NCBI GenBank assembly: GCA_937625935.1
Contig: OW569393.1
Coordinates: 248,001-312,000, forward strand
Direction of reading: 5' to 3'
From: Tetramitus jugosus
Lineage: Eukaryota > Protista > Heterolobosea
Length of the DNA stretch: 64,000 bases
Below the pieces are notes generated by a model, which was not told where the DNA came from, searched no databases, and saw nothing but the letters and a program-made list of their open reading frames with translations. Within the stretch, counting starts at the first letter, position 1; every line of letters begins with the position of its first letter. The translations under genes and the position numbers were made by a program. Positions 3,348-61,390 of the stretch are shown piece by piece.

Positions 3348-5746
3348 ATGTCAATTCGTGACAAGACTGTTATAAACAAATCAATTGCAATTGCAGTGGA
3401 TTTCGGAACTTCAAGAACAGGTAGGCCTGACAATTATTTTTTTAATGACAGCAGGAACATTGACGTGACTCTTTTTTTTCAAACCTTTCAATCATTTCAG
3501 GTTATGCCTATGGATTTCCTGGAAGAGAAGAAAGCAACAAGGAAATGAACTGGGATGATGCTCCTGAAAGTTATTGCAAAACTTTAACAAAAATTGCGTA
3601 CAATGAAGATGATGAACCAGAATTTTGGGGCTTCACAGCTTGGAAAGAAATGTTAGATGACTGTGACGAAGATAGAGTTCTTCGTTTGTTTGAATTCTTC
3701 AAAATGGGCCTTTTCACTGATGATCATGTTGTGAGAGACACAACTGGTACAGTAGAAAAGGATGCTCTTGATGTAGTTGTTGACTATCTCAAGTTTCTTT
3801 TTGAAAAAATCAAAGAAGATTTGTCAAAGAGAGTTGGTAAAGACATCTCACCGGCTGAGATTGTTTGGTGTCTCACGATTCCTGCCATTTGGAAAGATGC
3901 TGAAAAATCGTTGATGCGTCAAGCTGCTTATAGAGCAGGCATGATTGAAGTTGAACATCCACCAGAGGATGTATTCATGTTGGTGTTGGAACCAGAAGCT
4001 GCTGCTGTTTTTTGTATGATGCAACTCAAGCGTCAAGGAAATCCACTCAGAGATGGAGACAAGTTCTTGGTGTTGGATGCAGGTGGTGGAACTGTCGATT
4101 TGACAGCTCATACATACAGCAAGGGTAAACTCAAGGAAATTACCACTGGTTCTGGAGGTCCTTGCGGTTCATCTGAGCTCGATAAGAAGTTTGAGAAGCT
4201 GATGTCGGAAATCTTTGGTGAAAAGGTGATGGATGACATGAGAAAGAAACATGCCGTTCAACACTTTGAATTACTCAGTAACTGGGAAAGTGCAAAGTGT
4301 AGAACGAAGGATCTAAATGATAGAACATTAGTTAAAGCACCTGGTGTGTTGAATGCCATTCTTCGTAGAGCAGAGTTCAGTAGTTCATGCTTTGATTCTG
4401 ATTCTAATACTATCATTTTGGATCCGAATCTATTGAACAAGATTTACATGGACATCATTGAACAAATTTGTACATTGGTTGCTGATCAGATTGATGCATG
4501 CAAATCAACAACTGGTTCTTCGTTTGATTACATTTTCATCGTGGGTGGATTTGGAGGCTCAATAGTATTGCAAGATATTGTCAAGAGTAGATTCGGTACT
4601 ATGATTAATAAGGGAATTGTTGTTCCTCCTGTACCTGGAGAGGCAATTGTTGATGGTGCTTTGTATCTTGGTCTTGATCCAAGTATTATTTCATCCAGAA
4701 GAATGAGAATGACTTATGGTTGTGCAGCAATGAAGGTCTTTGATCCAAATATTCATGATCCAAAGAAGAGAAAAGTCATTGGATCAACCACCTATTGTGT
4801 TGATATCTTTGATAAGTTTGTGACCAATGGAGAGGAAGTCGAGATTGATAAGGGTGTCACAAGTACGTATAAAGCGTCACTTGCTGATCAAAAGTCAATG
4901 GTCATTGCCGTTTATGGAACAAAGGTAACTAACATGAATTATATCGATGATCCTGCAAGTAACAAAATTGGAGAAATTATTATTGATATGAGCGATACAT
5001 CTGGTGGAATCAATAGATGTGTTGAAGTGACCATGTACTTTGGAAAATCTGAAATCCAATTACATGCTATTGAGAAGAACTCTGGAAAGGAATACAAAGC
5101 TGCCATCAAATTCCAAGGAGAGCTGTTTGAAACAGAACACACAACTACTCATCACCCTGAACATAAGTATCATATTATTTTTTCTAATGATAGATCTGGT
5201 TCAATGGGCTCCACTGATGTAGTCCCTTCTCTCAGTTTCCTTAAGAGTTCTCATAACAACCGCTTGGGAGCTCTGTATGAGGCATGTTCTTCCTTTTTGG
5301 ATCAAAGATCAGGTTCTCAAGATATAGTTTCTTGCATCATGTATGATGATAGCTCTAGTATTTGTTTCGAGAGACGGCCGTTATGTACAAGTTTAGTTAA
5401 AGACTACATGTTGAGGTACACAGCATCTGGTGGAACGTGTTTCTATTCTGCAATGAGTGCTGTTCAAGGTGTTGTTTCTCGAAATCCAAACGGATACACT
5501 CCCATTGTTATTTTTATGACTGATGGTGAGTGTTCAGATGAAGGTGCATCATCGACTCTTCGCAATATCGTGAGTTTATACTCTCACACTGGTTTTAAGC
5601 TTCACTCAGTTTTGGTTGGTCGTGGCAGTTACCATTCATTACTCCAGGAATTTGCTCGTATTGGAGGAGGTACTTTTTCTACTTCGGGCTTGAACTTGGC
5701 TGATATGAAGCAAACATACACCCAGTTGGCTGGGAGACTTGAATAA
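3348..5746 (+). CDS. HSPA12-like atypical Hsp70 fused to C-terminal VWA domain; exons 3348-3420 and 3501-5746 (772 aa)
   Basis: An 80-nt GT-AG intron joins AVDFGTSRT to GYAYG. Motifs WCLTIPAIW, LEPEAAA, DAGGGTVD, IVGGFG and SRRMRMTYG are typical of the HSPA12 type. VWA MIDAS DRSGS, GGT and IFMTDG are present. Confidence 0.9.
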
Positions 5747-10000: not shown

Positions 10001-11503
10001 CTACCTGCTCGAATCAACAGAAATCAGAGAAGAAAGAGCAAGAGATATGGAAATAATACCACAGATGATTATAGAGCACCATATTGTACGAGACTCGGTA
10101 TTGGTAGGGGGAGAGAGAATTTCTCAGCTTTGCAATGGTTTCAAGCAGATATAGTAGATTTGACATGTAGCTCTCAACCACAATGTACGGTTGGATTGGA
10201 AATTTATAAAGAATCAGATGATAACGAATCACAACATAGTGATTCTGATGATGAATCATACCAGCCATCCTCCCATGTGGAGCAAGAAACTCGACTGTCC
10301 CTGTCCAAGATGAATCAATGACTCGTCACAGTTGTCTGAACAATCATCAGTTTCCAAGACACCTATTGTTTCTCGTAAGAATCGCAAGCATAGGAGACGT
10401 ATCAATTCAATCAAATCTGATGCACAAACAGTAGTCAGTAGTGAAGTGTCATGATCTGCTGCAGTATCTGGTTCAAGTCGAAGACGTCCACGCAAGCGAC
10501 AGCGAGAAGTTCAAGGAACACTTGGTGGTGGAGCGGATTTTCGAAATGTGGGACTGGGATCCCTGGTTTTGTCTGCGACTCAAAGTTCTGGGAGCTCTGA
10601 TAGGTCCCATTCGGTCCCAGTTTTTGTTGTTGACAATGTCAGTAAAGTATCGAAGATGTAAGAAATATTAGAACATATTTATTTTAATTCTGCCATGGCT
10701 CTTCTTTTGGAATCATTTTCAATCATGCGCATTTGGCGTGATAAGCTCATCTTCACTGGTAGTTGAGGAAGAGAAGTCTTCTGTCTCTTTGGTCTCCGCT
10801 GTACACCATCAGATTCGTAACCATCAGATTCAGATTCATCCTCAACAATTCTCTTCCTCTTCTTGGAGCCTTTCACTGAAGTAGAAGTTGAAGTGGCTGG
10901 TGGACATTGACTGCTGTCACTAGATGATGATAGTCTATTTCCATTCTTAATTCATTATTCTTATCTTCACAAAGCTCATTATTGCTCTCAGATTGAACCT
11001 AGATCCATAATTGCTGATCAAAAGAATTTGACAAGGAGATTTCTTATGAAAAGCCGTTCATATAGAGCCATCCTTTTGTATATTGCCAGGTTATTTCAGT
11101 TGAATATTCATTATCCTTATACTTCATTTCATCGAACAATGTACTCAAAAACTTTTGCATTACATAGAACTGCATGTCAGGTAACTTTGATCTAGAAGAG
11201 CGATAGTTATTGGCCTTAATTAATTAATTATCTATCTGTGTTTGATGAAAGAGTCAACAACAAAATTCGAGTGTTCTCATCTCCCGGTTGAGACTCTCAT
11301 TTTTCTAACGCTTGTTGTCGGGTAATTGTCATAAAATCACGATTGTCCGAAAAAATGCAATCATTTTCAAGATCTGGTTTGAGTTTAATGTCATCTGAGC
11401 TTCAATCATTGAGGGTTCATATGTCACAGTTAACTACGTCTTACTAACCAACCCTTGATAAATATCCTCTTATCATAAAATTGATTGCGTTGTTCATACT
11501 AAC

Positions 11504-11800
11504 ATGACCATGAAGGAATTCGCGGAAGCAATCAGATGGCTAAGGAACAGAAAATGTCCAGGTGCTGACGGTTTTCATAACGAGATGGTCAAACTACCCC
11601 GCACCAAGAAAAGAGACTTCAGATGGGACTTGTCGGAGACTCTCTGCAATTTTCAACAATATCACTGCTACAGGCAAGTTCCCCAGAGCCTGTATTGAGA
11701 ACCCATCTGCTCTGATCAAGCAGTATAAAATGGGAAAGGGTTGTCGCCTTCGGGCTAATGCTCCGCTCGCTGCTTGGGGAACTTGTACTTCATGGTGAAT
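11504..11800 (+). mobile_element. Non-LTR retrotransposon (LINE) ORF2 fragment
   Basis: KCPGADGFHNEMVK followed after a frameshift by LSAIFNNITATGKFP, matching the KaPGpDG...L..lFN....G.fP pre-RT motif. Confidence 0.65.
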
Positions 11801-11942
11801 ATGATGCGGAACCAAGCAGAGCCTGGGTTCTATCATTTTTTGACCTTTGAAAGAGGTGAGGTACTCGAAGGACTTACCGGCTCAGTTCTTGAAGGTCTGG
11901 GGCGTCTTTTTCGGTTCTTTCGTGATATCAATGGTGTGACAT

Positions 11943-12917
11943 TCATATCAACACTTGCATGACGTGTGGTACTATTGCACCGATATCTTGATCTCTAGTA
12001 ACAACGAGCTGATCATCTTCGATATCACTTTTTTTGCTAATCTTTGTGACAGACTCAATGAATCTCTGAAGTCCCGATATATTCTCCTTGCAACGATTTA
12101 TGCCCAATTCAACAGTGTCTGGCGCCCTCCTGAAGGAGAGGTCGACGTTTGATAGAGCGCTTTTGAACTCCAGAAAGGCTCTTTCATCAATATCAAACAG
12201 TGTTGCACTGTTTACAACAACATTCTTGTTGTGTACCAGCTGCATAATGTTATGGAGTGATTCCACATTGTTTGCTGTATGCGGTATATCGCTCCAATGT
12301 TCCACTAAGCTGTACGCCTTGGTGAGTAAACGTAAGTTACAATCTCTTGTCCACCGGTCGACCCATGACCTTGCTCCTGGATATGTAATGTCTATAGCCT
12401 TGAAGATAGTAACGATTGACTCACAATCCTTGTCAAATGGAATGGTCTTACAGAAATTCACAAATCCCTCCTCCTTATCAGCAGAACAAATCAATTTTGC
12501 CAATTGCAAGACCGTACCCAATGTACGTGACAACCTTTGATCAACGATTCCGACAAGTTGTTGTCATCGAAAATCACAGCCAAAGCCAACTTGAGACCCT
12601 AGTACTGTGCTGTGGAGAAGTCAACCAAAATTCCAGCAACTTCATCAAACAATACATTTACATCGATCCCATCTTCCATCAAGGTGTTCAAAAATTGAAC
12701 AAATGCCATCCTATAACTATCCGCAGTTAAACTGTTCATCTGTACTCTGCACAGCATTACAGTTTTGTTCATTATCGGAACAAATCCACATATACCAAAA
12801 TGATGCCGAGCATTATCATGCTTCACATCAATAACAAGACAATCTACAAGGGGGACCAGAGAACTCTGAAAGAACGATTTTGTTTGGATCCAAGTATTTA
12901 AGTCCGTTACCAAGAAG
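11943..12917 (-). mobile_element. MULE-like transposase catalytic region (copy 2, 3' part), frameshifted
   Basis: Putative DDE: VIDVKH / ILVDFS / TANNVESLH. Interrupted upstream by the Ginger element. Confidence 0.65.
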
Positions 12918-22379: not shown

Positions 22380-22999
22380 ATTGGCATTGCATGTCCCTCA
22401 ACTCTCTTCGCAACAAACACCACAACAACAACAGCACTCTTCGTGGTTTTCCTTTTGGTTATTCCACTTCGACCTTTGGAACTTATCAAGACTCTCTTTG
22501 AAAGTATTGACTTCTAAATCCTCAAAATCATCAAAGTTTTCTGACCGGTTCAGTCCTTTCAAAAGTATTGACTCTCAGAGAGTAAAACAAAAGATTGCAG
22601 TAGTAGTAATGTAGGCACTATTGATGGTTCTACTATCGGTTCGATTGTAGGTGCTAGTGTTGGTGCTAGTGTAGAATTGTCGGCTCTGCACTTTATCTTG
22701 ACCAGTTCTCAGTGCGTCCTCTTGAAAAATTCTTTCAACTGTGAGCAGACGAGATGGATAGAGCGTTATGTGACAGATACGATCGCTTTTCCTAACAAGT
22801 AACGTATCTTCGTCATCTGCTTTCGTATTTTATGTAGCTGTTGCAGCGTCGATTCGAAGAGAGAGACTTCTTTGGCAAACTCTGAAGTATTCATATCAAT
22901 TTGACACTCAATTCTAGTTTGAGTAAACAATTTGTCTCATATCTCTTGTCGATGTCTTCAAATTTGAGTGCAATGATGGTGGGTTGAATACACTGTCTC

Positions 23000-23500
23000 A
23001 TAATCAACGTATGAGTGCTACCTGCGTCGCTCATAACACTCATCCTGAACTCTCACTTTCCTTGTCCGGGAAATCAGACATACCATATCTCGTTGACTGC
23101 AACTTCTTCTTCATCTTTTCCTGACTGACCTGCAATTCTGGATCAATCCTATTTGTAGTAACTTGGGTTTTTGGTTTGGGCTAGTTCCAAAATTTTCCAA
23201 CATGGTCTTCCTTCGAAATACTTCTGGGCAATAACGATCCAACTGTTGCGATCTACTTAGTAGTTGTTCCAATATTCGATTGACTTTGAATTGAGATCCT
23301 CTGTAGCGAGAAATGAGGTGACACAAGGAAACTGTGTGCATGATACATTTCCGTGTGGCATTGGAAATAGTCCAGAAGTTCAATTTGTGTGAGAATCAAA
23401 GACTCTCATATTCTCAACGAGACAAGACGATTTGCAAGTTGGAAACATTGGAATTTATCGATATGGCGATCGCGGACATAGTACATCTTTCCTAACAATT
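23000..23500 (-). mobile_element. Highly decayed LINE reverse transcriptase relic
   Basis: PYR*IPMFPTCK resembles the YRPIsllp..xK motif, followed by RKCIMHTVSLCHLI and MLENFG. Weak. Confidence 0.35.
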
Positions 23501-47010: not shown

Positions 47011-48907
47011 TCAATCGATTTGATACTTTGGCATCGGGAGTAGGTAAATCTCTTTTGCATTCAATCGGATGTTTACTTTAAGGTCCTGAAGCTCTTCTTG
47101 CACAAGGGAGGATTCTATCCAGAACAACGGTTTCTTCACCCTTGAACTGATCCTCAAATCATCACGATTCAACATCTGTTCCTTAACCTCTATATTCTCG
47201 ATTATGGCCATTCTCATTTGTTCCACTGTGGTGGATGGCTTGATAGGATGGTGGTATCGACGAGGTTGGCTCAGTTTTCCATCTCTCGCACAAACGTAAA
47301 AAAGTAAGTCAACTTCACCACTGTCTTCGTCGTCAGATATCAGAATGGGAGCATTATCGACCTGATCGGTTGACTCCAGAACATCGGTTTGGTTGTCTTG
47401 GAACGAAAACTCATTGTGTGATAGATTCTCTATCTCTTGGTCAACAGATTGTTGCATGTTCTCGTTGATTTGATCCTTTAACTCATTCAATTGGTTCTTT
47501 GTCTGGGCACATGTAGGGTCTATCTCCAATAATTCCTCACACGCTTCGACTGCTTCATCGAGTTTCTTCAAAGTTGTGAATATGGTAATGAGAGAACGAT
47601 AAATGCTGACTTGTTCTTCGTTGTGTTCACCAGGAGAGCATAAATCAAGTGCCTTGTTCAAGAATTCAATAGCTTTCTCATTCTTGTTCATTGAGGATTT
47701 AATCTTGGCCGCAAGCATGAAATCCTTGATAGAGTAATTCGTTTCATCTTCATCTACTGAAGAACTAATTGACTTATCCAAGTAAGTGTCGGCCTTTTCT
47801 AACTCTTCCTTACTGAAGAAAGTGGCCGCAAGGTTCCAATAGAGAGTTTCATTAAGGTCCTCATCATCAACAATATTCTCTGACCTTTTATCATAGGTTG
47901 TAAGAGCTTTAGAGCTGTTTCCACTCAGAAGGTAACAAAGAGTCAAAACCTTATTGGCTCTATAGTAGTACACTGTTCTCGGATGATCATCCTTGTGTCT
48001 TCCCTTGCCAATACCTTTCAAGTACAGTTGGGCTTCCTCGTAACGCTCCAATCTAAAGAGTGCATGACCCCTAGAAAATGAATCACGCGATTCACTTAAA
48101 TAGGCCCACGCATTCTGATCCCCCTGAGTTTTACGGAGACATTCAGCCATGTTTTTTTCTACCTCACGATGTATTCTTTTGCTATCTTTAATGACCTTTC
48201 CATAGCAATGGATTGCTTTTCCATACTCTGAGAGCTCATAATAAACATCTCCTAACATCTTTTGAGCTTCAGAAAGGAAATCAACTCCGTATGAGAGAGT
48301 GTTTTGGAAGTACAGTGTCCCAAGCGAACCCAGAGTTAATTCGTCTGCAATGTACACACCCTCTGATTCATTGCTAAGAATTTCTTCCAGAATCTGTTTG
48401 GATTGTTCATACTTTGTCTCCCCAAGGTTCTTTCCCTCCACAAACATGTAGCAACAGGCGAGATGGTAAAGTGAACACCAATTCCTGCCTTTCTTTGGCT
48501 TCTGGATGCCTAAACGAGAAGCATTATGCTTCAATGACTGTTTAAAATTAGTTTTGGCTGTTTTATAATGATTGACATACTGTTCTTCATTATTTTCACA
48601 AGTTATCTTCATCAACTCTTCGTAACAAATGCCCATGTTATTGTAGATATCTTCTGTGTTCCAAGAGTTGGGCTTCTTGGATTTCTGCTCCTTTTCCAAA
48701 CAGAGAGAAAAAGTTTTCGCAGCTTCCTGGTACTCCCGTCTTTTGAATAGGGAAAGACCCTTGTTGTACAATTGGAGAGCGCTTCTTTCTCTTGGACTGG
48801 GAGAGGAAATTTGGCTACGAGGTCTCTACAAAAAGGCCGTCTTCGTGAGTACGTACTGAGTGACATCCTTAAAAAACATGGGTTACCTTCTGGGATTTTG
48901 TGATCAT
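47011..48907 (-). CDS. TPR protein with possible ubiquitin-like C-terminal domain; exons 48907-48887 and 48825-47011
   Basis: Multiple TPRs. A phase-0 61-nt intron supplies the ATG, in the same position as in paralog 53850-55682. Confidence 0.75.
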
Positions 48908-49998: not shown

Positions 49999-51435
49999 TA
50001 GGTAGTTAGTACTTTGGTTTTCGTTCTCTTATACTATCCTAAAATTTCGTTCATAAACGATGTGAGGACAATGCATACTGGGGGGTTTTGTTCCATGTTA
50101 GAATTAGAGGAGATGTCACACACATATCATCTTGACAGATTAGGTGACCTCAGGTTTTGCCCATGCATGAACACTTTCGGGCCTTGGTTCGCGGAAAACA
50201 AGTGTACCATTAGTTACTCGGTATCAACGTGATTTGTGACTCTCAAGGTCATCTTCGAACAAGCAAGGTTCCTAGCAATGAACTGTGTATTTGCAATCGA
50301 AAGTCTGGATATTTCAAAGGCATTAAGTCTTTCCAAAGAACAAGTCATGGATACTGTTCCAGCTGTTAACATACATAATTAATCGTAGATGGCCCTCTAC
50401 AACAAAGGAATTACTTTTTGGTTATGTACTCCGAATGATCTGTTAGAAATTTTACTTGATGCCTTTACGGCAAGAAGTGATTTGGCTGAATTGAATCAAA
50501 GTAATGTAACCCAGTTGAAAAGGTGAAAAACAACATGGAAAAACACATTTCAGAATGACTGCTTGATGGACTTGAGCTGACACGTAAATTCAATGTTGCT
50601 CTTGCATGTTTTGATAGTGCTTCAAAATGTCACTTCTCTGTTCAATAACTGGAGCAGCACTGGAACTTCAAAGTCAATGACACGTGCAACTACAGATCGA
50701 TTCTGGTTGCCACGACTCAAGACTGCGCCTTCATGCGCGGTACACTAGTGTTGGCACTGCCCAAGCTTCGCGTTAAAAGCTCGAATGAGGAGGAAACCCT
50801 GCATGATTAGTTGGGCTGACAAGAAGGCCACCTACTCTGCTCCGTTTCACTTGTATGTGACGGATGTAGTGATCAGAGGGGACATACTCTTGCAGAATAC
50901 TCTGAAGAGTGACCATGCAAGAATCTTTGCCCAGCATTGATCTCCTTTCCGAGTCTGCTACTTTCGTTGTCATCTCTTGTCAGGAACGACGGTGGGTCCA
51001 TCAACATGACATACCCTTCAACAGTTACGTAACCCAACACACCAGTAGCCTCAGAGAGCACGACAAGCTATTGAACAATGGACAAACGGTGATCATCACA
51101 GACGACCAACAAGCTCGAACTGAAATTGATCTTACCAACTCCACCTTCCCAGGCCATTTGGTTGACCACCCAGTCCTTCAGTTATTTGTTGCCGTTCACT
51201 CTGAATACATCCAGCAGCTCATTCAGTTCGCTTTTCTTGGTTGGGTTGGTGTGTTCATGCAAGACATTCAGCTGGTCCCTTTTCGTCGGAGTTGAGCAAT
51301 TGGAAAGTTCATGTCACATTTATTAATAAAAAAGGTAAAGTTGTCTCAATGTGGAAGAGGTCCGTTATACCCTTAGTTAATGTGAATCCGATTTTAAACT
51401 TGTGAAACAGAAAACTCTGGACAACAGAACAACTG

Positions 51436-53849: not shown

Positions 53850-55682
53850 TCAATTGATTTGATACTTCAGTTTTGGGAATAAGTATATCTCTCTTGCTTT
53901 CAACTTGTCATTTACCTTGAGTCTCACAATTTCGTCATGAACAAGCGTTTCATCGCTCCAGAACACTGGTTTGAGTACTCTAGGACTTATCCTGAACTGT
54001 TCAAGATTTAGTTGCTTTGCGTCCAAATCGTCCAAAATGTTCCTTCTCATGTCTTCAAATGTGGTTGAGGACTTGATGACATGTTGGTATCTGAATGGAT
54101 TGCTCAGCTTACCGTTCGACTTACAAACATAAAAAACAACATCCATGTCATCATCACTCTCTCTTTCTAACTCCAAAACAAAAGTTGGAGATTGAGGAGG
54201 CTCCTCTTGATAGGTGGGCTTCTTCTTCATTGGTGTTTCTTTTCTGGATAGGCTTGACTTGCTCTTCTTAAGTTGATTCTCAAGAAGCTTCTTTTCCTTC
54301 TTTGTTTCTGAGCAGGAAGGTTTTAACTTCAGCAATTCCTTGCAAGTATTGACAGCCTCGTTGAGTTTCTGAGTATTTGTAAATATTGTGATGAGGGAAC
54401 GATAAATATTCTCTTGGTCCTTTTTGTGCTTCTTCTGGGTGCATAGAGCGAGTGCCTTGTTTAAGAATTCAATGGCTTCTTCGTTCTTTTCGACTGAAGA
54501 CTTGATATCAGCTGAAACTATGTAATCTTGAATGGTAAAATCAGACCTGTCATTCCCATAACAACTGAGAGACATATCCAAGTACTTGTTTGCTTCTTCG
54601 TGCTGTTCGTCGTTGGCGTTGGAAACCGCAATATTCCAATAGAGGATACCATTGAGATGTCCATCATATTCAACCTTCTCAGATCTTGCATCATAAACCT
54701 TCAAGGCTCTCGAGTTGTCCTGAGTCATGAAGTAGCAAAGAGTCAACAACTTGTTTGCTTTATAGTAGTATACCGTTTTTGGATGATCTTCTTTATGTCT
54801 ACCCTTGTCGATATGTCTCAAGTCTTTCTTTGCTTCTTCGTAGTTCTCCAGCTGAAAATGGGCGAATCCTCGAGTGTAACAATCGCTTGACTTTGTTAAA
54901 TAAGTCCAAGAGTCTTGTTCTCCTTGGGAGTTCTTCAAACAGTTTGCTATCTTTTGTTCTACCTCTTGTTTGAATTCTCCACCCACGATCTTCAAGATTT
55001 TGCCATAACTATGAATTGCTTTCCCAAAATCTGAGGTCTCTGCATAAATATCACCCAACATCTTGCGTGTCTCGATCATAACATCGATTGACCTTGAAAC
55101 TGTTTTCTCCAAGTTCTGTTTTCCCACCGAATCCATAGTGAGTTCATCGGTGACATACAAACCTTCCGATTCATTTCTTTCAATTTCTTCGAGATATTTC
55201 AAAGATTGTTGATATTTAGGTTCAGCATCTTTTCCTTCGACAAATTTGTAACAACTTGCTAGATGGTACAGTGAGCAGCAATTTCTTCCCTTTTTGACCT
55301 TCAAACGAGAAGCATTGAGTTTCAATGCTCTTTCAAAGTAACTCTTTGCAGTTTTGAAGTGTTGGAGATAATTCCTCTCATCATTTTCGAAAGCTACCTC
55401 CATCAACTCCTGGTAGCATATACCAATGTTATTTACAATGTCTTCTGGATTCCAAGAGTTGGTGACCTTGGCTTTCTTCTCTTTTTCCAAACAGCGAGTG
55501 AAAGTGTCAGCAGCTTCTTGATATTCTCTCTTGTTGAAAAGAGTGAATCCCTTGTTGAACAATTGGAGAGCACTTGGTTCTCTCTTAGGACTTGGTTTTG
55601 GTTCACGATCTCGCTGGCAGATTGACAAGTCAGATCAAACTTCCTCTCAAAACATATTGTGCACACTTACCTTCAATGGCAT
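53850..55682 (-). CDS. TPR protein, paralog of 47011-48907; exons 55682-55671 and 55613-53850
   Basis: Collinear similarity (NSWN.EDI.NN.GICY, KGRHK.DHP.TVYYY, EIYL.P..KYQI). 57-nt GTAAGT...CAG intron. Confidence 0.78.
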
Positions 55683-55914
55683 CGCTTCTCGATTTTTTGA
55701 TGTGGTTTGTTTTAATCTTGAGGGAAGAAATTTTGTAATCCACATTCCTTTTTTAAATTATCCATTGACATGTGACACTGGGCTTTACTTTTTCCGACAA
55801 TTTTCTCGACCGAAATGGAAGAGAGGGAAGTTGTAACGCTGTTCTCCGTAATTTTTTGATGTTAGAAAGTTGATCCTTCCCAAAAACCAACAAAAAACAA
55901 CACAACAAGACAGA

Positions 55915-58900
55915 ATGGCGAGAACAAGGAATGCGACTGCTGCAAGCGACCCTCCTGCAGCTAAAAAAAGGAGAACCTCCTCAAGTACTGAAAGAAGAGA
56001 AGAATCAGAACAAGTCATCAACAAGGTGAAAGATTTGAGTGGAGATGTTGAGAAACTGTTGGATAAAGTAGGTTCTTTCATGAAGTCTTATGAAAATTGC
56101 CACAGTGAAAACTCGAGTCAGTTCCAACTGTTGCGTACCATTCAAAAACATGCAGCTTCCACAGCTTTGTTTCGTGACGTGAAGAACAAGTCGACCACAA
56201 TTAATATGGCTATGGTCGGTGCTACTGGAAGGGGCAAAAGTTTCATAGGTATGAACGTGATGGGATTTGGATTTTTTTAAGTTTCGTTCTCTGTGCTAAC
56301 ACTTGATTTTCATGAACGGGACAACTGTAAATAGCAAATAATTTGGCTCTGTACGGCACACCGGTCTTTAAAAAAGAACATTTGAGTAAGTTGTTGCCGT
56401 CTACTGTGGATGCAGATGAGGAGTATGATTGTGTAACAGTCATTTCATTCAAGTTGACTTACGAGGAGGAATATTTCCGCTTGAAGTTACACAGAAGGTT
56501 TGATATGGACTCTGGAGATGATGAGGAGCAAAACGATATCGTGATTCCTGAGGATAAGAGCGAAGAAGATAGCACTCAAAGTAGTGTTGGTGAAGAAAGA
56601 GAGGAGGTGAAGATGTTGTATGAGTATCGTCACAATGGCTCATTGGATGAGAAATCATGGTTGGACCAGCTAAACAACATCCGAAGACTGGTCGATGACA
56701 CTACAGATAAGATCAATAGTGGAGAAATTAGATTGGCTGAATGTAAATTCTTTGAAATTGAGGGACCTTTTCCTCTGCTGAAGAGTTATAATTTATCCAT
56801 CTATGATGTATGTAGTTTGTTATCGTGTTGCCCGTAATGCCTCTCTCTAAGCCGTTTATTGTATATAGATTCCAGGATTGACTTCGGACAACGATGATAT
56901 CATAAATTCTGCTACTGCAACATGCAAAGAAGCAAACGTTGTGTGCTTAGTCAACAGCATGGAGACGAGAGGAAAACTCGAGAATCAAGATTTCAATCTC
57001 TTGGAGCCATTTGTTGATAAGGATTTTACCCAGATACCAATCGTTGTTTTTGTTGACAATGTATCTCGAAGATTGAAAGAGGTAGGAGATATTAACTCAG
57101 CAGATGCAAGAAAGAGAATAGTCGGTGATCAACAGGTATTGGATGTATTGATCAATTTCATTCGAGAAAATAGACATAAGCCCAAGTTTCTCCCCAATAT
57201 CAGTGGCTACAGAAGAAATGCGATCGTTGACAAACTGCTCAAGACAAGTTTCGGATTTGCTTTTTATGGCGCTTACTCTGCTGGTTCCAATGTTAAACCA
57301 TTTTCTGATCTGATTGGAAATTCAAATTCCACTTCTCTAGATCCATTCTGTACTCTCCAAGTCTGTAGAAGATATCTTGAGGAGAGAAGCCTTCTACAAA
57401 GCAAGTTTCTTGCTGTGAACTGCATATTTGCCATTGAACGTGATCTAGCCAAGAAAAGATTTCAGAACATTGCAACTCATGCAACACAGATGGAGAGCAT
57501 TGTTGACAAGGAGATGGTTGCTCGAAAACAGATGACGAATAAGTGGAAAGCAGTGTGTGGTCGTGTAATTGATGCTATGGACAATGAATTTACACCGGTG
57601 AAAATCCATGTTCAAAGACTGTGGAGGAAGAGGCTCTTATCTATTATTCCCACTGACTTGTACTTTGACATCATCGAAAGTTGTTTAGAAGAGAATTTAC
57701 AGACCTGTTATGATTTACTAGAAGAGAATTTGAGAAAGATGTTTAAACTAAATGATAGTTATGAATTCCCAGAAGACATTGAGGAGGAGCAACAATACGA
57801 CGAATCGAACAACCCTATCATAATGTCCAATGATAGAAACCCAGTCTCAGACAAACCTCAAGATGAAATTTATCTGAAAGTGAGAGAATCACTTCGAGAA
57901 TTTGTGCGAGAGAAAGCAGAAGAGTTGAGATCTCGAGATGTTCTAACAGATGTGCAAGAAAAGATGTCCAACATTCTGAAGAACAACATTGCTCGCCATG
58001 AGAATCTGGATTTTTCCAATACCATCAATCTTTCCAAACAACGAGTCATGGATATCGTTCAGCGAATGTTAACTCACATGATCAACCGTCGGTGGTCATT
58101 AAGAACAAAGGAATTACTCTTTGGTTCTTTATTTACTCCGAACGACTCGCTAACAAGATTATTTGAGTCTTTTAAAGCCTATGTAGATGGCGCTGAGTTA
58201 GATCAAGCTTCAGTAAAGAAGTTGAAGACTTCAATAACTAAATGGAAGAATCTCAACTTGAAGAAATCTCAAAATAGAGATCTCATTACAATGAAGACCT
58301 TTCAGCAAAGAGATTGGGTGGAATTTAATCATGAACAAGTGGACATTTCAGAGAAGGACCTTTCAAGAACTAAACGCGCACAACGGCAGTCTGAGAAACA
58401 AATTACTCAAAATAGTGTAACGAGCGAGGTGGCAACAAAGAACTTCACTAACTTCGTAGTGAATGATAATTCACCTGTCCAAATTATTATCGATCCAGAA
58501 GCACAGGATTCCTTGATTAGTATCACTTACAGGTCAGAGGGAATCTCGGAAGAAAATTCTGAGATTATTATTCATCTTTACCCAGAGTGGCAAAAGGATC
58601 TTCTCAAATTGATGAAAATCCCTGAAGCGAGCCGAATACATCCAATCTTTATGCCATCATATCGTAGAGCTAAGGACATAAAGAAGAATATCTTCTTTAA
58701 CGGAACAGATTACTTAGAGAACAATGCATACTTGGTGTACCTTGTTGTTGAAGAAGAGGAGGCCTCCGAGTATTACAATATCTTGAAAAAGGAGTTGAGT
58801 CTACTGAAGTTAGTGTTTGTGACGATTCCTAGTGGCAGTCGCGGTATTGGGTTCTCTCGTGCCATGATAAATCTCTTGCAATGCCAGATGAACAAACTCA

Positions 58901-59880
58901 TGAAAAAGGATGGAAATCCTGCATTTGAGTGGTTCTGGACCATTGATGATGATATACGAGGTGTTAGGATGTTTAATATTGATTCACGAACTCTAACAAT
59001 GACTACCCCTTGCACTCTATCGCTAGCATTGCTACAATCCCAAAGAATGCTAAAGGATAGAATAGTTCAAGAACTCAAACAGATAAAGGGTTCAGAGAAT
59101 CTGTCCTTAGTAGAGATGTTCCGTGATGAAATTGATGAATTGTTGAACACTGATGAGAGAAGACATCTGACTCGTGTAATTGAAACGACAATAACGATCA
59201 ATAAGTTGTTAGAATTCAGCACTAACTCAGATGAGGTCGCCTGCTATCAATACCTTCGTAACTTATGTGTAACAAACAAGAGCTTGAAACAAAAGTTCGC
59301 AGAAAACCTGGGACAATGGTTGGATCGAAATATGTCTGAGCAACACTTCCGTAACTGGTTCCGAGAAGTGTTTATCCCATCGCATAAGAGCCAAGGAAAA
59401 ATAGTTCAACTCGCTATAGTTACTAGTCGAATGAACGATAGCCGCACAAATTATAATTTTCTCTCGCGATTGCAATCACATTATCGAGTTTCTTCACACA
59501 GATATGCTTGCGTCCTCAACTATGCCCCTGGAATAAGTGGCTACAACTATCTATCCTTTGATCAATTGTTGATGAATGATGAAGAAGTGTACCAGGAGAG
59601 AGTACGTTATGATAAAGAAAGTCCTTCGGATCGGAAGGAACGAATTCAGAGTATTGCAGCTGCATTGTCCACTGCCAAGAATCGTTTCATGGATGGAGAG
59701 ACTCCAACAGTACCAAACTATGAGTTGCGAGATACATTCTTGGGAGAGGATAAAAAATTTATTGAGAGACTTGAGTTGGACAACAAGACTGGTTTTCAAG
59801 TGTTCTTCTTTGATATTGAATGGGGTAAGCAGAAAACTGGTGGTTGTTTCATTTTCAGGAAAAAACATCAGACATATTGA
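55915..59880 (+). CDS. Dynamin-like GTPase fused to GREB1/TAGT-type GT-A glycosyltransferase; exons 55915-56248, 56335-56807, 56869-59880 (1272 aa)
   Basis: Two GT-AG introns join three ORFs in frame, giving G1 GATGRGKS-FIANNL and G3 YDIPGL. C-terminal PIFMPSYRR, LVVEEEE..EY, P..SRGIGFSR, WTIDDDI and GED. Confidence 0.75.
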
Positions 59881-59969
59881 ACCTAATCCAGTCACAATTG
59901 GCGGTTTTCTTGTCAGAAGGACAACAAGATCATTGGAATAAAGAATTGGATTAAACATGTTTTTTGTGG

Positions 59970-61271
59970 TCAGGACTGACAGGTTACTGTCACATCGCAT
60001 AGAAACTGCCTCAGACGCAACCCGTTAACATCAAGCAAAAATTTCTTCTGCACCGCCTGGTGTACAATGGTTGTGAAGTAAGAACCTGTCATTTGAACAC
60101 ACATAGCTTCATCTAGAGTCATCTCAGTTTCGAATGGTACTTCTTTAGGTGCTTCATTGTCATCAGAGTAACTTCGTAGCCTGTATATTGTGTTTTTAAC
60201 ACGAGCATACATCTCGGCACAACTGGAACCAATTTGAGTCATTGGCCCAAGAGAGAGCAAAGTGATAACATTCTCTTTGGTTTCTGTGTTACCTATGTGT
60301 ACATGCCCACTCGCATCCAGAGCAATGTATCGAGTCCAAGAGCAACATACATCAAGCACATGTACCTTTCGATTAAACAGAGACTCTTCTCGAGTATATT
60401 CTCGTTCTATTCCTGTTGTAAACAAGTTTCCTTGATAATCCAACAGAACTGAAAACATTTCACCAGCATCAATTTTCTTACATTCAAAATTGATGGGACC
60501 TCTCTCGAGTGACAAAGGGTGAATGTAATGCATAAGAGAGACATTTGGATCTATCTGATCTTTTGATAATAGGTGAGAGTTTGGTTGACCCAAACGATAC
60601 ATATTCATCGTGTGTTGTTCTTGCATGAGCAGAAATCGTTTTCCAGATCCCATCTTGCTGATACGGTTCATATGACTATCCATGATGACTGCTCTTGGAA
60701 CACACTGTGTAGTTGCACGATTATTTTCGTCGCTAGAATATGCGCTCTGGGTAACATCGTCCCAGTACTTTCTAGCAATATTTCCACAAGTAAACACTTT
60801 ACCAGTAGTGCTCAAGAAAGCAGAGAACCATCCGTTAGCTCGTACGCACTCAATCTTCAGATTCTTAATTTGTCCATTTATCAACGTTGGATATTTTGTT
60901 CTTTGAGAGTGACCTAGACCTAATTGGCCACTCTCGTTACCTCCCAGTGCCCAACACTTGCCATTAAACTCCAAAAGAATCATGTGCAACGATCCACATG
61001 CAATCTGCTTAATGTGCCTCTGCCCTTGACTCATCAACCACTGTTCATCTCCATGTTCCACAGAGTAACCACCATCTCTGACCTTGATCAACTTGGTTAC
61101 TTGCTTAAATTCACGTCCCAATGGTTTCATCGTGGTGGTGGTAGTGGTATTCTCTTCATCTCTCCATAACTCACCAAATGTGCTTCGTCCCATACCGAAC
61201 AGACTCGATGTCCCAGGTACCATTCTCTTGATGATCCATGTTTCTTGGTGGTCTGCTGGACCAGGTTGCAT
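59970..61271 (-). CDS. RCC1/BLIP-II repeat protein
   Basis: IACGSLH, GGNESGQLGLG, GKVFTCG, IDAGEMFS. Start placed at the first ATG. Confidence 0.8.
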   Translation of the reverse strand: MQPGPADHQETWIIKRMVPGTSSLFGMGRSTFGELWRDEENTTTTTTMKPLGREFKQVTKLIKVRDGGYSVEHGDEQWLMSQGQRHIKQIACGSLHMILLEFNGKCWALGGNESGQLGLGHSQRTKYPTLINGQIKNLKIECVRANGWFSAFLSTTGKVFTCGNIARKYWDDVTQSAYSSDENNRATTQCVPRAVIMDSHMNRISKMGSGKRFLLMQEQHTMNMYRLGQPNSHLLSKDQIDPNVSLMHYIHPLSLERGPINFECKKIDAGEMFSVLLDYQGNLFTTGIEREYTREESLFNRKVHVLDVCCSWTRYIALDASGHVHIGNTETKENVITLLSLGPMTQIGSSCAEMYARVKNTIYRLRSYSDDNEAPKEVPFETEMTLDEAMCVQMTGSYFTTIVHQAVQKKFLLDVNGLRLRQFLCDVTVTCQS

Positions 61272-61390
61272 TTTGGATGTTCCTTTGTTGCAACTTCCAG
61301 AAAAGTTTCGCCGGATGGTCGTGGAAATCATCGCGGTGTTTTTGGAATTTTTAGGAGAATTAAGAGAGGAACTGAAATCTGCTGACTTGA

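Follow-up and report, generated by a model that had tools for sequence, protein, structure and literature searches.

A Spliced, Expressed Gene of Tetramitus jugosus Encoding a Predicted Dynamin-like NTPase Fused to a TAGT-type Glycosyltransferase Domain

Introduction

Does one gene of the heterolobosean protist Tetramitus jugosus join a dynamin-like NTPase to a glycosyltransferase (GT) of the TAGT type, and, if so, what might such a protein do? The question is raised by positions 55915-59880 of a stretch of 64,000 nucleotides (contig OW569393.1 of assembly GCA_937625935.1, positions 248,001 to 312,000 of the forward strand), which is called the window here and whose numbering is used throughout. 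An earlier note, made from the letters and their open reading frames (ORFs), had read at this place a dynamin-like GTPase fused to a GREB1/TAGT domain, and had suggested a nuclear enzyme acting on oxidized DNA bases or on proteins.

TAGT stands for TET/JBP-associated glycosyltransferase, a name that refers to the association with TET/JBP genes. Hydroxymethylated DNA bases are the described targets of the phage TAGT enzymes and of the kinetoplastid JGT, the latter working downstream of the JBP1/2 hydroxylases. To our knowledge, JGT has no dynamin-like domain, and we know of no dynamin-like protein (DLP) with a C-terminal glycosyltransferase. GREB1 is an inducible animal protein O-GlcNAc transferase that has a TAGT-related GT domain and carries, in addition, a Zn-binding domain at the N-terminus, together with an SF2 helicase that is circularly permuted and inactive; GREB1-like proteins have been reported in "Naegleria-like Heterolobosea" (PMC7968844). 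According to literature cited by the same paper, JGT is a TAGT-superfamily enzyme from a member of the Discoba.

Structure and Transcription of the Gene

By direct reading, three exons on the + strand (the strand of all features described here unless stated otherwise) encode a single protein of 1272 residues, namely 111 residues, one split codon, 157 residues and 1003 residues. Exon 1 (55915..56248) starts with the ATG at 55915, ends in phase 1 and encodes a basic tail, a helical lead-in and the P-loop. After intron 1 (56249..56334; 86 nt, GTAT..TAG), exon 2 (56335..56807) provides the G2 region, an acidic insertion and the strand before G3, and ends with the codon for the Asp of the DIPG motif. 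Intron 2 (56808..56868; 61 nt, GTATGT..TAG, phase 0) cuts G3 between this Asp and IPG, and exon 3 (56869..59880, stop codon included) encodes the remaining 1003 residues.

Logan contigs placed on positions 55700-60000 came from four RNA runs of four studies, i.e. one oligo-dT library and three soil metatranscriptomes. Both joints were found exactly in RNA contigs, each in four runs, with 86 and 61 nt skipped and GT..AG borders in both cases, so that the splicing of three ORFs into 1272 residues, as the earlier note had proposed, was borne out. Single RNA contigs span exons 1 and 2, others run from exon 2 into exon 3 through to 58960, which lies within the GT domain, and one further contig extends beyond the stop codon. 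Since the RNA contigs begin at 55903-55905, the ATG at 55915 is the first one. The G and GT domains are encoded by one expressed, spliced transcript.

Homologues agree with this gene model. At the homologous locus L006 (protein P0001 together with its unannotated upstream exons, about 45% identical), both introns are present at identical codon positions and phases, and on contig L005 (protein P0002) one ORF runs uninterrupted over both exon junctions, with an identity to exon 3 of 66% in alignment A1 and of 60-65% by tblastn. The 40 best-supported of 82 strain differences include 26 synonymous changes and no change to a stop codon, and six of the 14 non-synonymous ones fall in exon 2. This synonymous bias and the lack of new stops are consistent with a gene that has been maintained intact.

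The Glycosyltransferase Domain

The C-terminal 444 residues (58546..59880; exon-3 residues 560-1003 and the stop codon) constitute the TAGT-type GT-A domain. The motifs PIFMPSYRR, GIGFSR and WTIDDDI are located at exon-3 residues 592, 659 and 690, and the late ED lies in GEDKK at residue 959 (approximately 59743-59757). The DDD at 58945-58953 (exon-3 residues 693-695) is shared by 30-33 of some 36 family members.

In the hmmscan search, TAGT (PF20691; match at 58642-59025) was the sole GT family of Pfam that was matched, with 24.7-26.4 bits for a gathering cut-off of 27.5 bits. The score in the genome profile scan was 26.8 bits (27.7 bits with in-frame neighbours), the homologues P0001 and P0003 scored 38.5 and 37.0 bits, both above the cut-off, and 24 of 39 family members matched TAGT. 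Neither the window protein nor the 39 family members gave a match to GREB1_C (PF20267) at E <= 1 or to any GT2-type Pfam family. The TAGT profile is aligned over its first 112 of 205 positions only; this is because a helical insertion of about 124 residues (59017..59388), delimited from the secondary structure of the AF2 model, interrupts the GT-A core. The window protein is thus a borderline-scoring member of the TAGT superfamily.

An AF2 model of exon-3 residues 560-1003, made with a 39-sequence alignment, had a pLDDT of 88 and a pTM of 0.87. The earlier note had called for a structural comparison of this part, and Foldseek and VIA returned GT-A enzymes as all of the leading PDB matches: SpsA, K4CP, TarP/TarS, ColGalT1, B4GALNT1 and GnT-I. 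The VIA Z scores fell from 14.5 to 10 in a flat series with none standing out, and the alignments cover residues 22-444 but align just 180-210 residues. Exon 3 and the family profile gave nothing meaningful by sequence against all PDB chains, and the flat structural matches together with these empty searches indicate that no close relative has a solved structure. Among predicted structures, the nearest were phage TAGT proteins. The top matches in BFVD, a collection of predicted viral structures, were for the most part phage TAGT-domain proteins (E values down to 8e-7; TM-score by target, 0.5-0.6) aligned over the whole GT domain, and the first match is annotated as beta-glucosyl-HMC-alpha-glucosyltransferase. 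An ESM Atlas shape search gave a TAGT cluster with a TM-score of 0.62 and a phage "GREB1-related" cluster with 0.69. By tblastn, the GT domain had no match in 50,697 phage records.

On the basis of the model, a GT-A fold with an intact DDD is confidently predicted for the C-terminal domain. Every position that at least 70% of the family members share is retained (PIFxP, VVE, P..RGI...R, DDD, C, Q, Y, HY..S..R, Y, G and GG). The DDD and 30 further conserved positions are kept, and the domain is apparently complete for catalysis. Instead of an ordinary GT2 glycan enzyme, of no GT fold or of exons transcribed apart, we found a borderline match to TAGT as the only GT family of Pfam, a GT-A model and RNA contigs that bridge the exons.

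The Dynamin-like Domain and the Rest of the Protein

The N-terminal NTPase domain is distributed over all three exons, with GATGRGKS at 56218-56241, LLPS..T, whose conserved Thr lies in CVTVI (56430-56444), and the Asp and IPG of DIPG at 56805-56807 and 56869-56877, respectively. Its remainder (56869..57363) comprises about 165 first residues of exon 3, including IPG of G3 and a degenerate G4 within VVFVDNVSR (57043-57069), where VDNVS keeps the Asn alone. An alignment of 14 members shows G1 (GxxGxGKS), the Thr of G2 and G3 (DxPG) to be invariant or almost invariant. All of the motifs quoted in the earlier note, including those of the GT domain and the KKRR of the tail, were found at the expected places. 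Between G2 and G3 lies an acidic insertion (56500-56640), whose length and sequence vary among homologues and whose model confidence is low; the net charge of exon 2 is -18.

When the exons were searched separately (window:55915-56247, 56337-56807 and 56869-59877), none of the three matched Dynamin_N (PF00350), the G domain being split across them. Scores against this profile in the family were 34.5 bits for P0035, which passes the cut-off of 27 bits, 25.7 for P0023, 20.8 for P0015, 17 for P0010 and 14.8 for P0002. For structural comparison an AF2 model of residues 60-470 of the homologue P0002 was used. The top 50 Foldseek matches of this model in the PDB all belong to the dynamin superfamily, among them SynDLP (2e-7), mitofusin 1/2, IniA, BDLP, Campylobacter DLP1/2, Fzo1, dynamin, Drp1, MxA and Vps1. 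In VIA, which covered 48,161 representatives, the Z scores were 15.6 for SynDLP, 15.1 for Fzo1, 14.8 for IniA, 14.4 for MFN2, 13.7 for Cj-DLP and 12.4 for BDLP, and about 10-11 for generic TRAFAC GTPases (MnmE, Era, Rab and similar). The dynamin-type G domain of the earlier note therefore gains support from the Dynamin_N score of P0035 and the structural matches of the P0002 model, and assignment of the N-terminal domain to a divergent dynamin-superfamily NTPase of the fusion-DLP type, with G1-G3 intact and G4 degenerate, is supported by modelling of the homologue.

The basic N-terminal tail contains KKRR at 55963-55974 and has counterparts in the three nearest homologues as well as in some of the distant members. 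A nuclear location is suggested by one feature, this conserved, basic tail resembling a nuclear localization signal (NLS). Between the two domains there is a middle region of about 394 residues (57364..58545), which is conserved among close homologues (alignment A1) and matched no Pfam family. It is presumed to be a helical stalk or bundle, for which an Atlas feature search gave leads at chance level to the Sey1 three-helix bundle and to GBP_C (0.77-0.81). No signal peptide or transmembrane segment was found anywhere in the protein, the highest Kyte-Doolittle mean over 19 residues being 1.1, and for this reason a soluble cytoplasmic or nuclear protein is indicated rather than one of the secretory pathway.

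The Family and its Distribution

A profile of the GT domain, searched exhaustively against 1.84 billion representatives, found 53 proteins at E <= 1e-3, so the family is rare. Many of its proteins are 1100-1600 residues long, the identity among the four closest homologues is 37-66% (alignment A1), and both Heterolobosea and a sea anemone (Actinostola) are represented. No named kinetoplastid protein was returned among the entries whose names were checked. The fusion is also present in single uninterrupted ORFs, on contig L005 and in P0035, P0023, P0015 and P0070, and in P0010 (Actinostola sp., KAK3732580.1, 1592 residues) two TAGT domains (approximately 128-422 and 1245-1532) flank the dynamin-like domain. 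The remaining members come from contigs of eukaryotic appearance, up to 3 Mb long, on which genes are sparse and retroelements occur.

In the 26.35 Mb assembly of T. jugosus, the gene studied here is the sole TAGT match of the genome profile scan. No Tet_JBP (PF12851) candidate was found in this assembly, by a scan without a positive control, so that absence is not proven, and GREB1_C gave nothing in the genome scan, likewise without a positive control. No TET/JBP gene was found in seven homologue contexts or in the window. Searches with PADLOC gave no match of any model to the window protein or its close homologues, and the distant member P0035 weakly matches LeoBC (E 1e-7) and LeoA.

Several features of individual homologue loci were recorded. 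Contig L005, which encodes the closest homologue P0002, has a frameshift in the GT domain at about 3373-3377, and P0002 is without about 60 residues that are present in all other close homologues immediately before the first GT strand with PIFMPSY; this frameshift and gap could be due to faulty assembly, to an isoform or to decay of the copy. The homologue of Willaertia magna, the closest one with a named source (blastp, 31% identity across 503 residues; L011, JBEGDK010000169.1, gene 10001-11956) is preceded by a mitochondrial-carrier gene that ends 500 bp upstream and is directly followed by a MACPF gene. A VWA gene (L008, 201-857; L012, 6140-6790) lies a few kb upstream of each of two distant intronless members on large eukaryote-like contigs, and L012 has a HEPN_DZIP3 gene downstream as well (22532-23344). 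The neighbours at L008 and L012 are reminiscent of invertebrate conflict or immunity neighbourhoods.

Comparison with Known Systems

Like the phage TAGT proteins, the protein has a GT-A core with a DxD motif, and TAGT is the only GT family of Pfam that it matches; phage proteins are also its nearest predicted structures. It differs from them in size and arrangement, since the phage proteins are single domains of 240-310 residues whereas the domain here is the C-terminal part of a eukaryotic protein of 1272 residues, in the insertion of about 124 helical residues, and in that no TET/JBP partner was detected. Like JGT, it would be a TAGT-superfamily enzyme of a Discoba eukaryote, but the scan of this genome, which had no positive control, detected no Tet_JBP domain.

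GREB1/GREB1L are similarly large, soluble and nucleocytoplasmic, with a P-loop-type module before a C-terminal TAGT-related GT domain. In the T. jugosus protein, however, a dynamin-like NTPase with intact G1-G3 replaces the Zn-binding and permuted-helicase modules. As it lacks both GREB1_C and these modules, it is not a GREB1-family member. The claim of a GREB1/TAGT domain consequently stands in one half, a TAGT-like GT-A domain as found with Pfam, BFVD and the Atlas, and falls in the other, GREB1. The same division applies to the interpretation of the earlier note as a whole: the spliced fusion, the dynamin-like G domain and the TAGT-like GT-A domain were supported, while GREB1 membership was not, nor did the scan of the genome, which had no positive control, detect Tet_JBP.

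The fusion-type DLPs (BDLP, SynDLP, IniA and mitofusin/Fzo1) have the nearest G-domain folds among solved structures (Z of 12-16 for the homologue P0002), and G1-G3 motifs and a long conserved region after the G domain are shared features. Differences from DLPs are the lack of a transmembrane or paddle-like hydrophobic segment, a G4 reduced to one Asn, the acidic insertion between G2 and G3, and the C-terminal glycosyltransferase. No description of a dynamin-TAGT fusion was found in the literature searched, which did not extend to the original description of TAGT (Iyer et al. 2013, NAR 41:7635). To the two known settings of TAGT-type enzymes the protein adds a third architecture, in which the GT domain is joined to a mechanochemical NTPase of the dynamin type, in a eukaryotic family that is small and patchily distributed.

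Proposed Function and Alternative Explanations

The protein is probably a soluble, nucleocytoplasmic enzyme of four parts, i.e. the basic tail, an NTPase of the fusion-DLP type, a presumed helical middle and a GT-A domain of the TAGT superfamily, that carries out nucleotide-gated or nucleotide-localized glycosylation. With a divalent metal held by the DDD and a nucleotide sugar, the GT domain would glycosylate a hydroxyl group of a macromolecule in the cytoplasm or nucleus, and this activity would be gated or localized by the dynamin-like module when it dimerizes or assembles in a nucleotide-dependent way. The data show the architecture, the expression and the fold assignments; catalysis, the donor, the acceptor and the nucleotide specificity are what we infer. 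As to the acceptor, a protein is somewhat favoured because GREB1 O-GlcNAcylates protein (PMC7968844) and because no hydroxylase that would supply hydroxymethylated bases was detected, while DNA is possible, given that phage TAGT proteins are structural neighbours and that the tail resembles an NLS. In a rough apportioning, protein Ser/Thr receives a little under half of the weight, hydroxymethyl-pyrimidine in DNA between a fifth and a quarter, and other acceptors somewhat less than a third.

Several points weigh against this picture. The hmmscan TAGT score of the window protein falls slightly below the gathering cut-off. The Asp of the (N/T)KxD motif is missing from G4 in most of the 14 aligned members, which makes specificity for guanine and GTP uncertain, and the G-domain model is that of the homologue P0002, with a moderate pLDDT of 71, low values being confined to the acidic insertion and the two ends. 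The Willaertia protein has a GT domain without a G domain, and none was found in the 10 kb upstream, so that the GT domain can exist without the switch. In addition, the GT domains are near-neutral in charge, which gives no hint of DNA binding.

According to the first of three other explanations, the protein would be a nuclear DNA-base glycosyltransferase that glucosylates 5-hydroxymethyl-uracil or -cytosine, made by TET/JBP enzymes in the cell's own DNA, into a hypermodified base. Such an activity would suit a GT of the TAGT superfamily, whose top BFVD match is annotated as beta-glucosyl-HMC-alpha-glucosyltransferase and most of whose other top matches there are phage TAGT-domain proteins, as well as the basic, NLS-like tail conserved in close homologues. 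We nevertheless consider it unlikely, as the Tet_JBP scan of the 26.35 Mb assembly was empty (a weak point, there being no positive control), a TET/JBP gene is missing from the seven homologue contexts and the window, the GT domain is not basic, and GREB1, a TAGT-related eukaryotic enzyme, modifies a protein (PMC7968844). A further, quite improbable proposal is a nucleotide-gated DNA-glycosylating machine, in which the dynamin-like module would form assemblies on chromatin or on the DNA of invading viruses or bacteria and the TAGT domain would then glycosylate bases that are hydroxymethylated or otherwise hydroxylated. If this were true, it would mean either a hypermodified base unreported outside kinetoplastids and phages, or a novel eukaryotic immune effector directed at nucleic acids.

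Defence has also to be considered in its own right: in a cell-autonomous effector, a dynamin-like immune GTPase (cf. Mx, GBP and LeoA/LeoBC) would bring a glycosyltransferase onto viruses, bacteria or their nucleic acids. The rare and patchy family (53 of 1.84 billion representatives), the rapid divergence (37-66% identity among the four closest homologues), decayed copies within this genome, the MACPF gene adjoining the Willaertia copy, the VWA genes near the L008 and L012 homologues, with HEPN_DZIP3 too at L012, and the weak PADLOC match of P0035 to LeoBC (E 1e-7) would all agree with it. These points are circumstantial throughout, however, no PADLOC model is matched by the window protein and its close homologues, and the strain variation is synonymous-biased with no sign of diversifying selection; we regard the explanation as rather improbable. 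Finally, the generic GT-A matches in the PDB with their flat Z distribution might be expected of an ordinary glycan-making enzyme of the GT2 type, and the degenerate G4 of a non-catalytic scaffold with relic GT and G domains. Both are very improbable, because TAGT is the only GT match in Pfam, with no GT2 or other glycan-GT family beside it, neither a signal peptide nor a transmembrane segment is present, the catalytic-type residues conserved in the family are all kept, and the gene is expressed with synonymous-biased variation.

As a tractable microbial system, the gene could serve to study the roles of GREB1-like enzymes outside animals, and to test directly whether a dynamin-like switch can gate glycosyl transfer and whether amoeboflagellates have glycosylated DNA bases.

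Related Fragments and Neighbouring Genes

Three decayed copies of the gene are present in the genome. One of them, a fragment at 50245..50571 with internal in-frame stops, is in the window; it is 61% identical to residues 672-773 of P0002 and 43% identical to the intact gene. The other two, L002 (G000:C36:1016-1531; about 1 kb from a contig end) and L003 (G000:C40:406869-407018), match the C-terminal end of the GT domain only, with 40% and 66% identity, and are likely pseudogene remnants.

The fragment in the window lies beside a TPR gene (47011-48771, - strand), and the intact gene has a divergent TPR-repeat gene (53850..55628, - strand) at 286 bp from its start codon. The 50% identity of the two TPR genes, together with the decayed fragment beside one of them, indicates that a divergent cassette of two genes was duplicated and that one copy decayed. 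The TPR pairing shows segmental duplication only and no functional link. Neither TPR protein had a tblastn match at eight homologue loci, whose contigs are short or begin at the gene.

On the other side, a convergent RCC1-repeat gene (59970-61331, - strand) ends 90 bp past the stop codon of the gene described here. Since one of the RNA contigs extends out of the GT domain and across the gap between the genes, reaching 60000 or beyond, their 3' ends may overlap.

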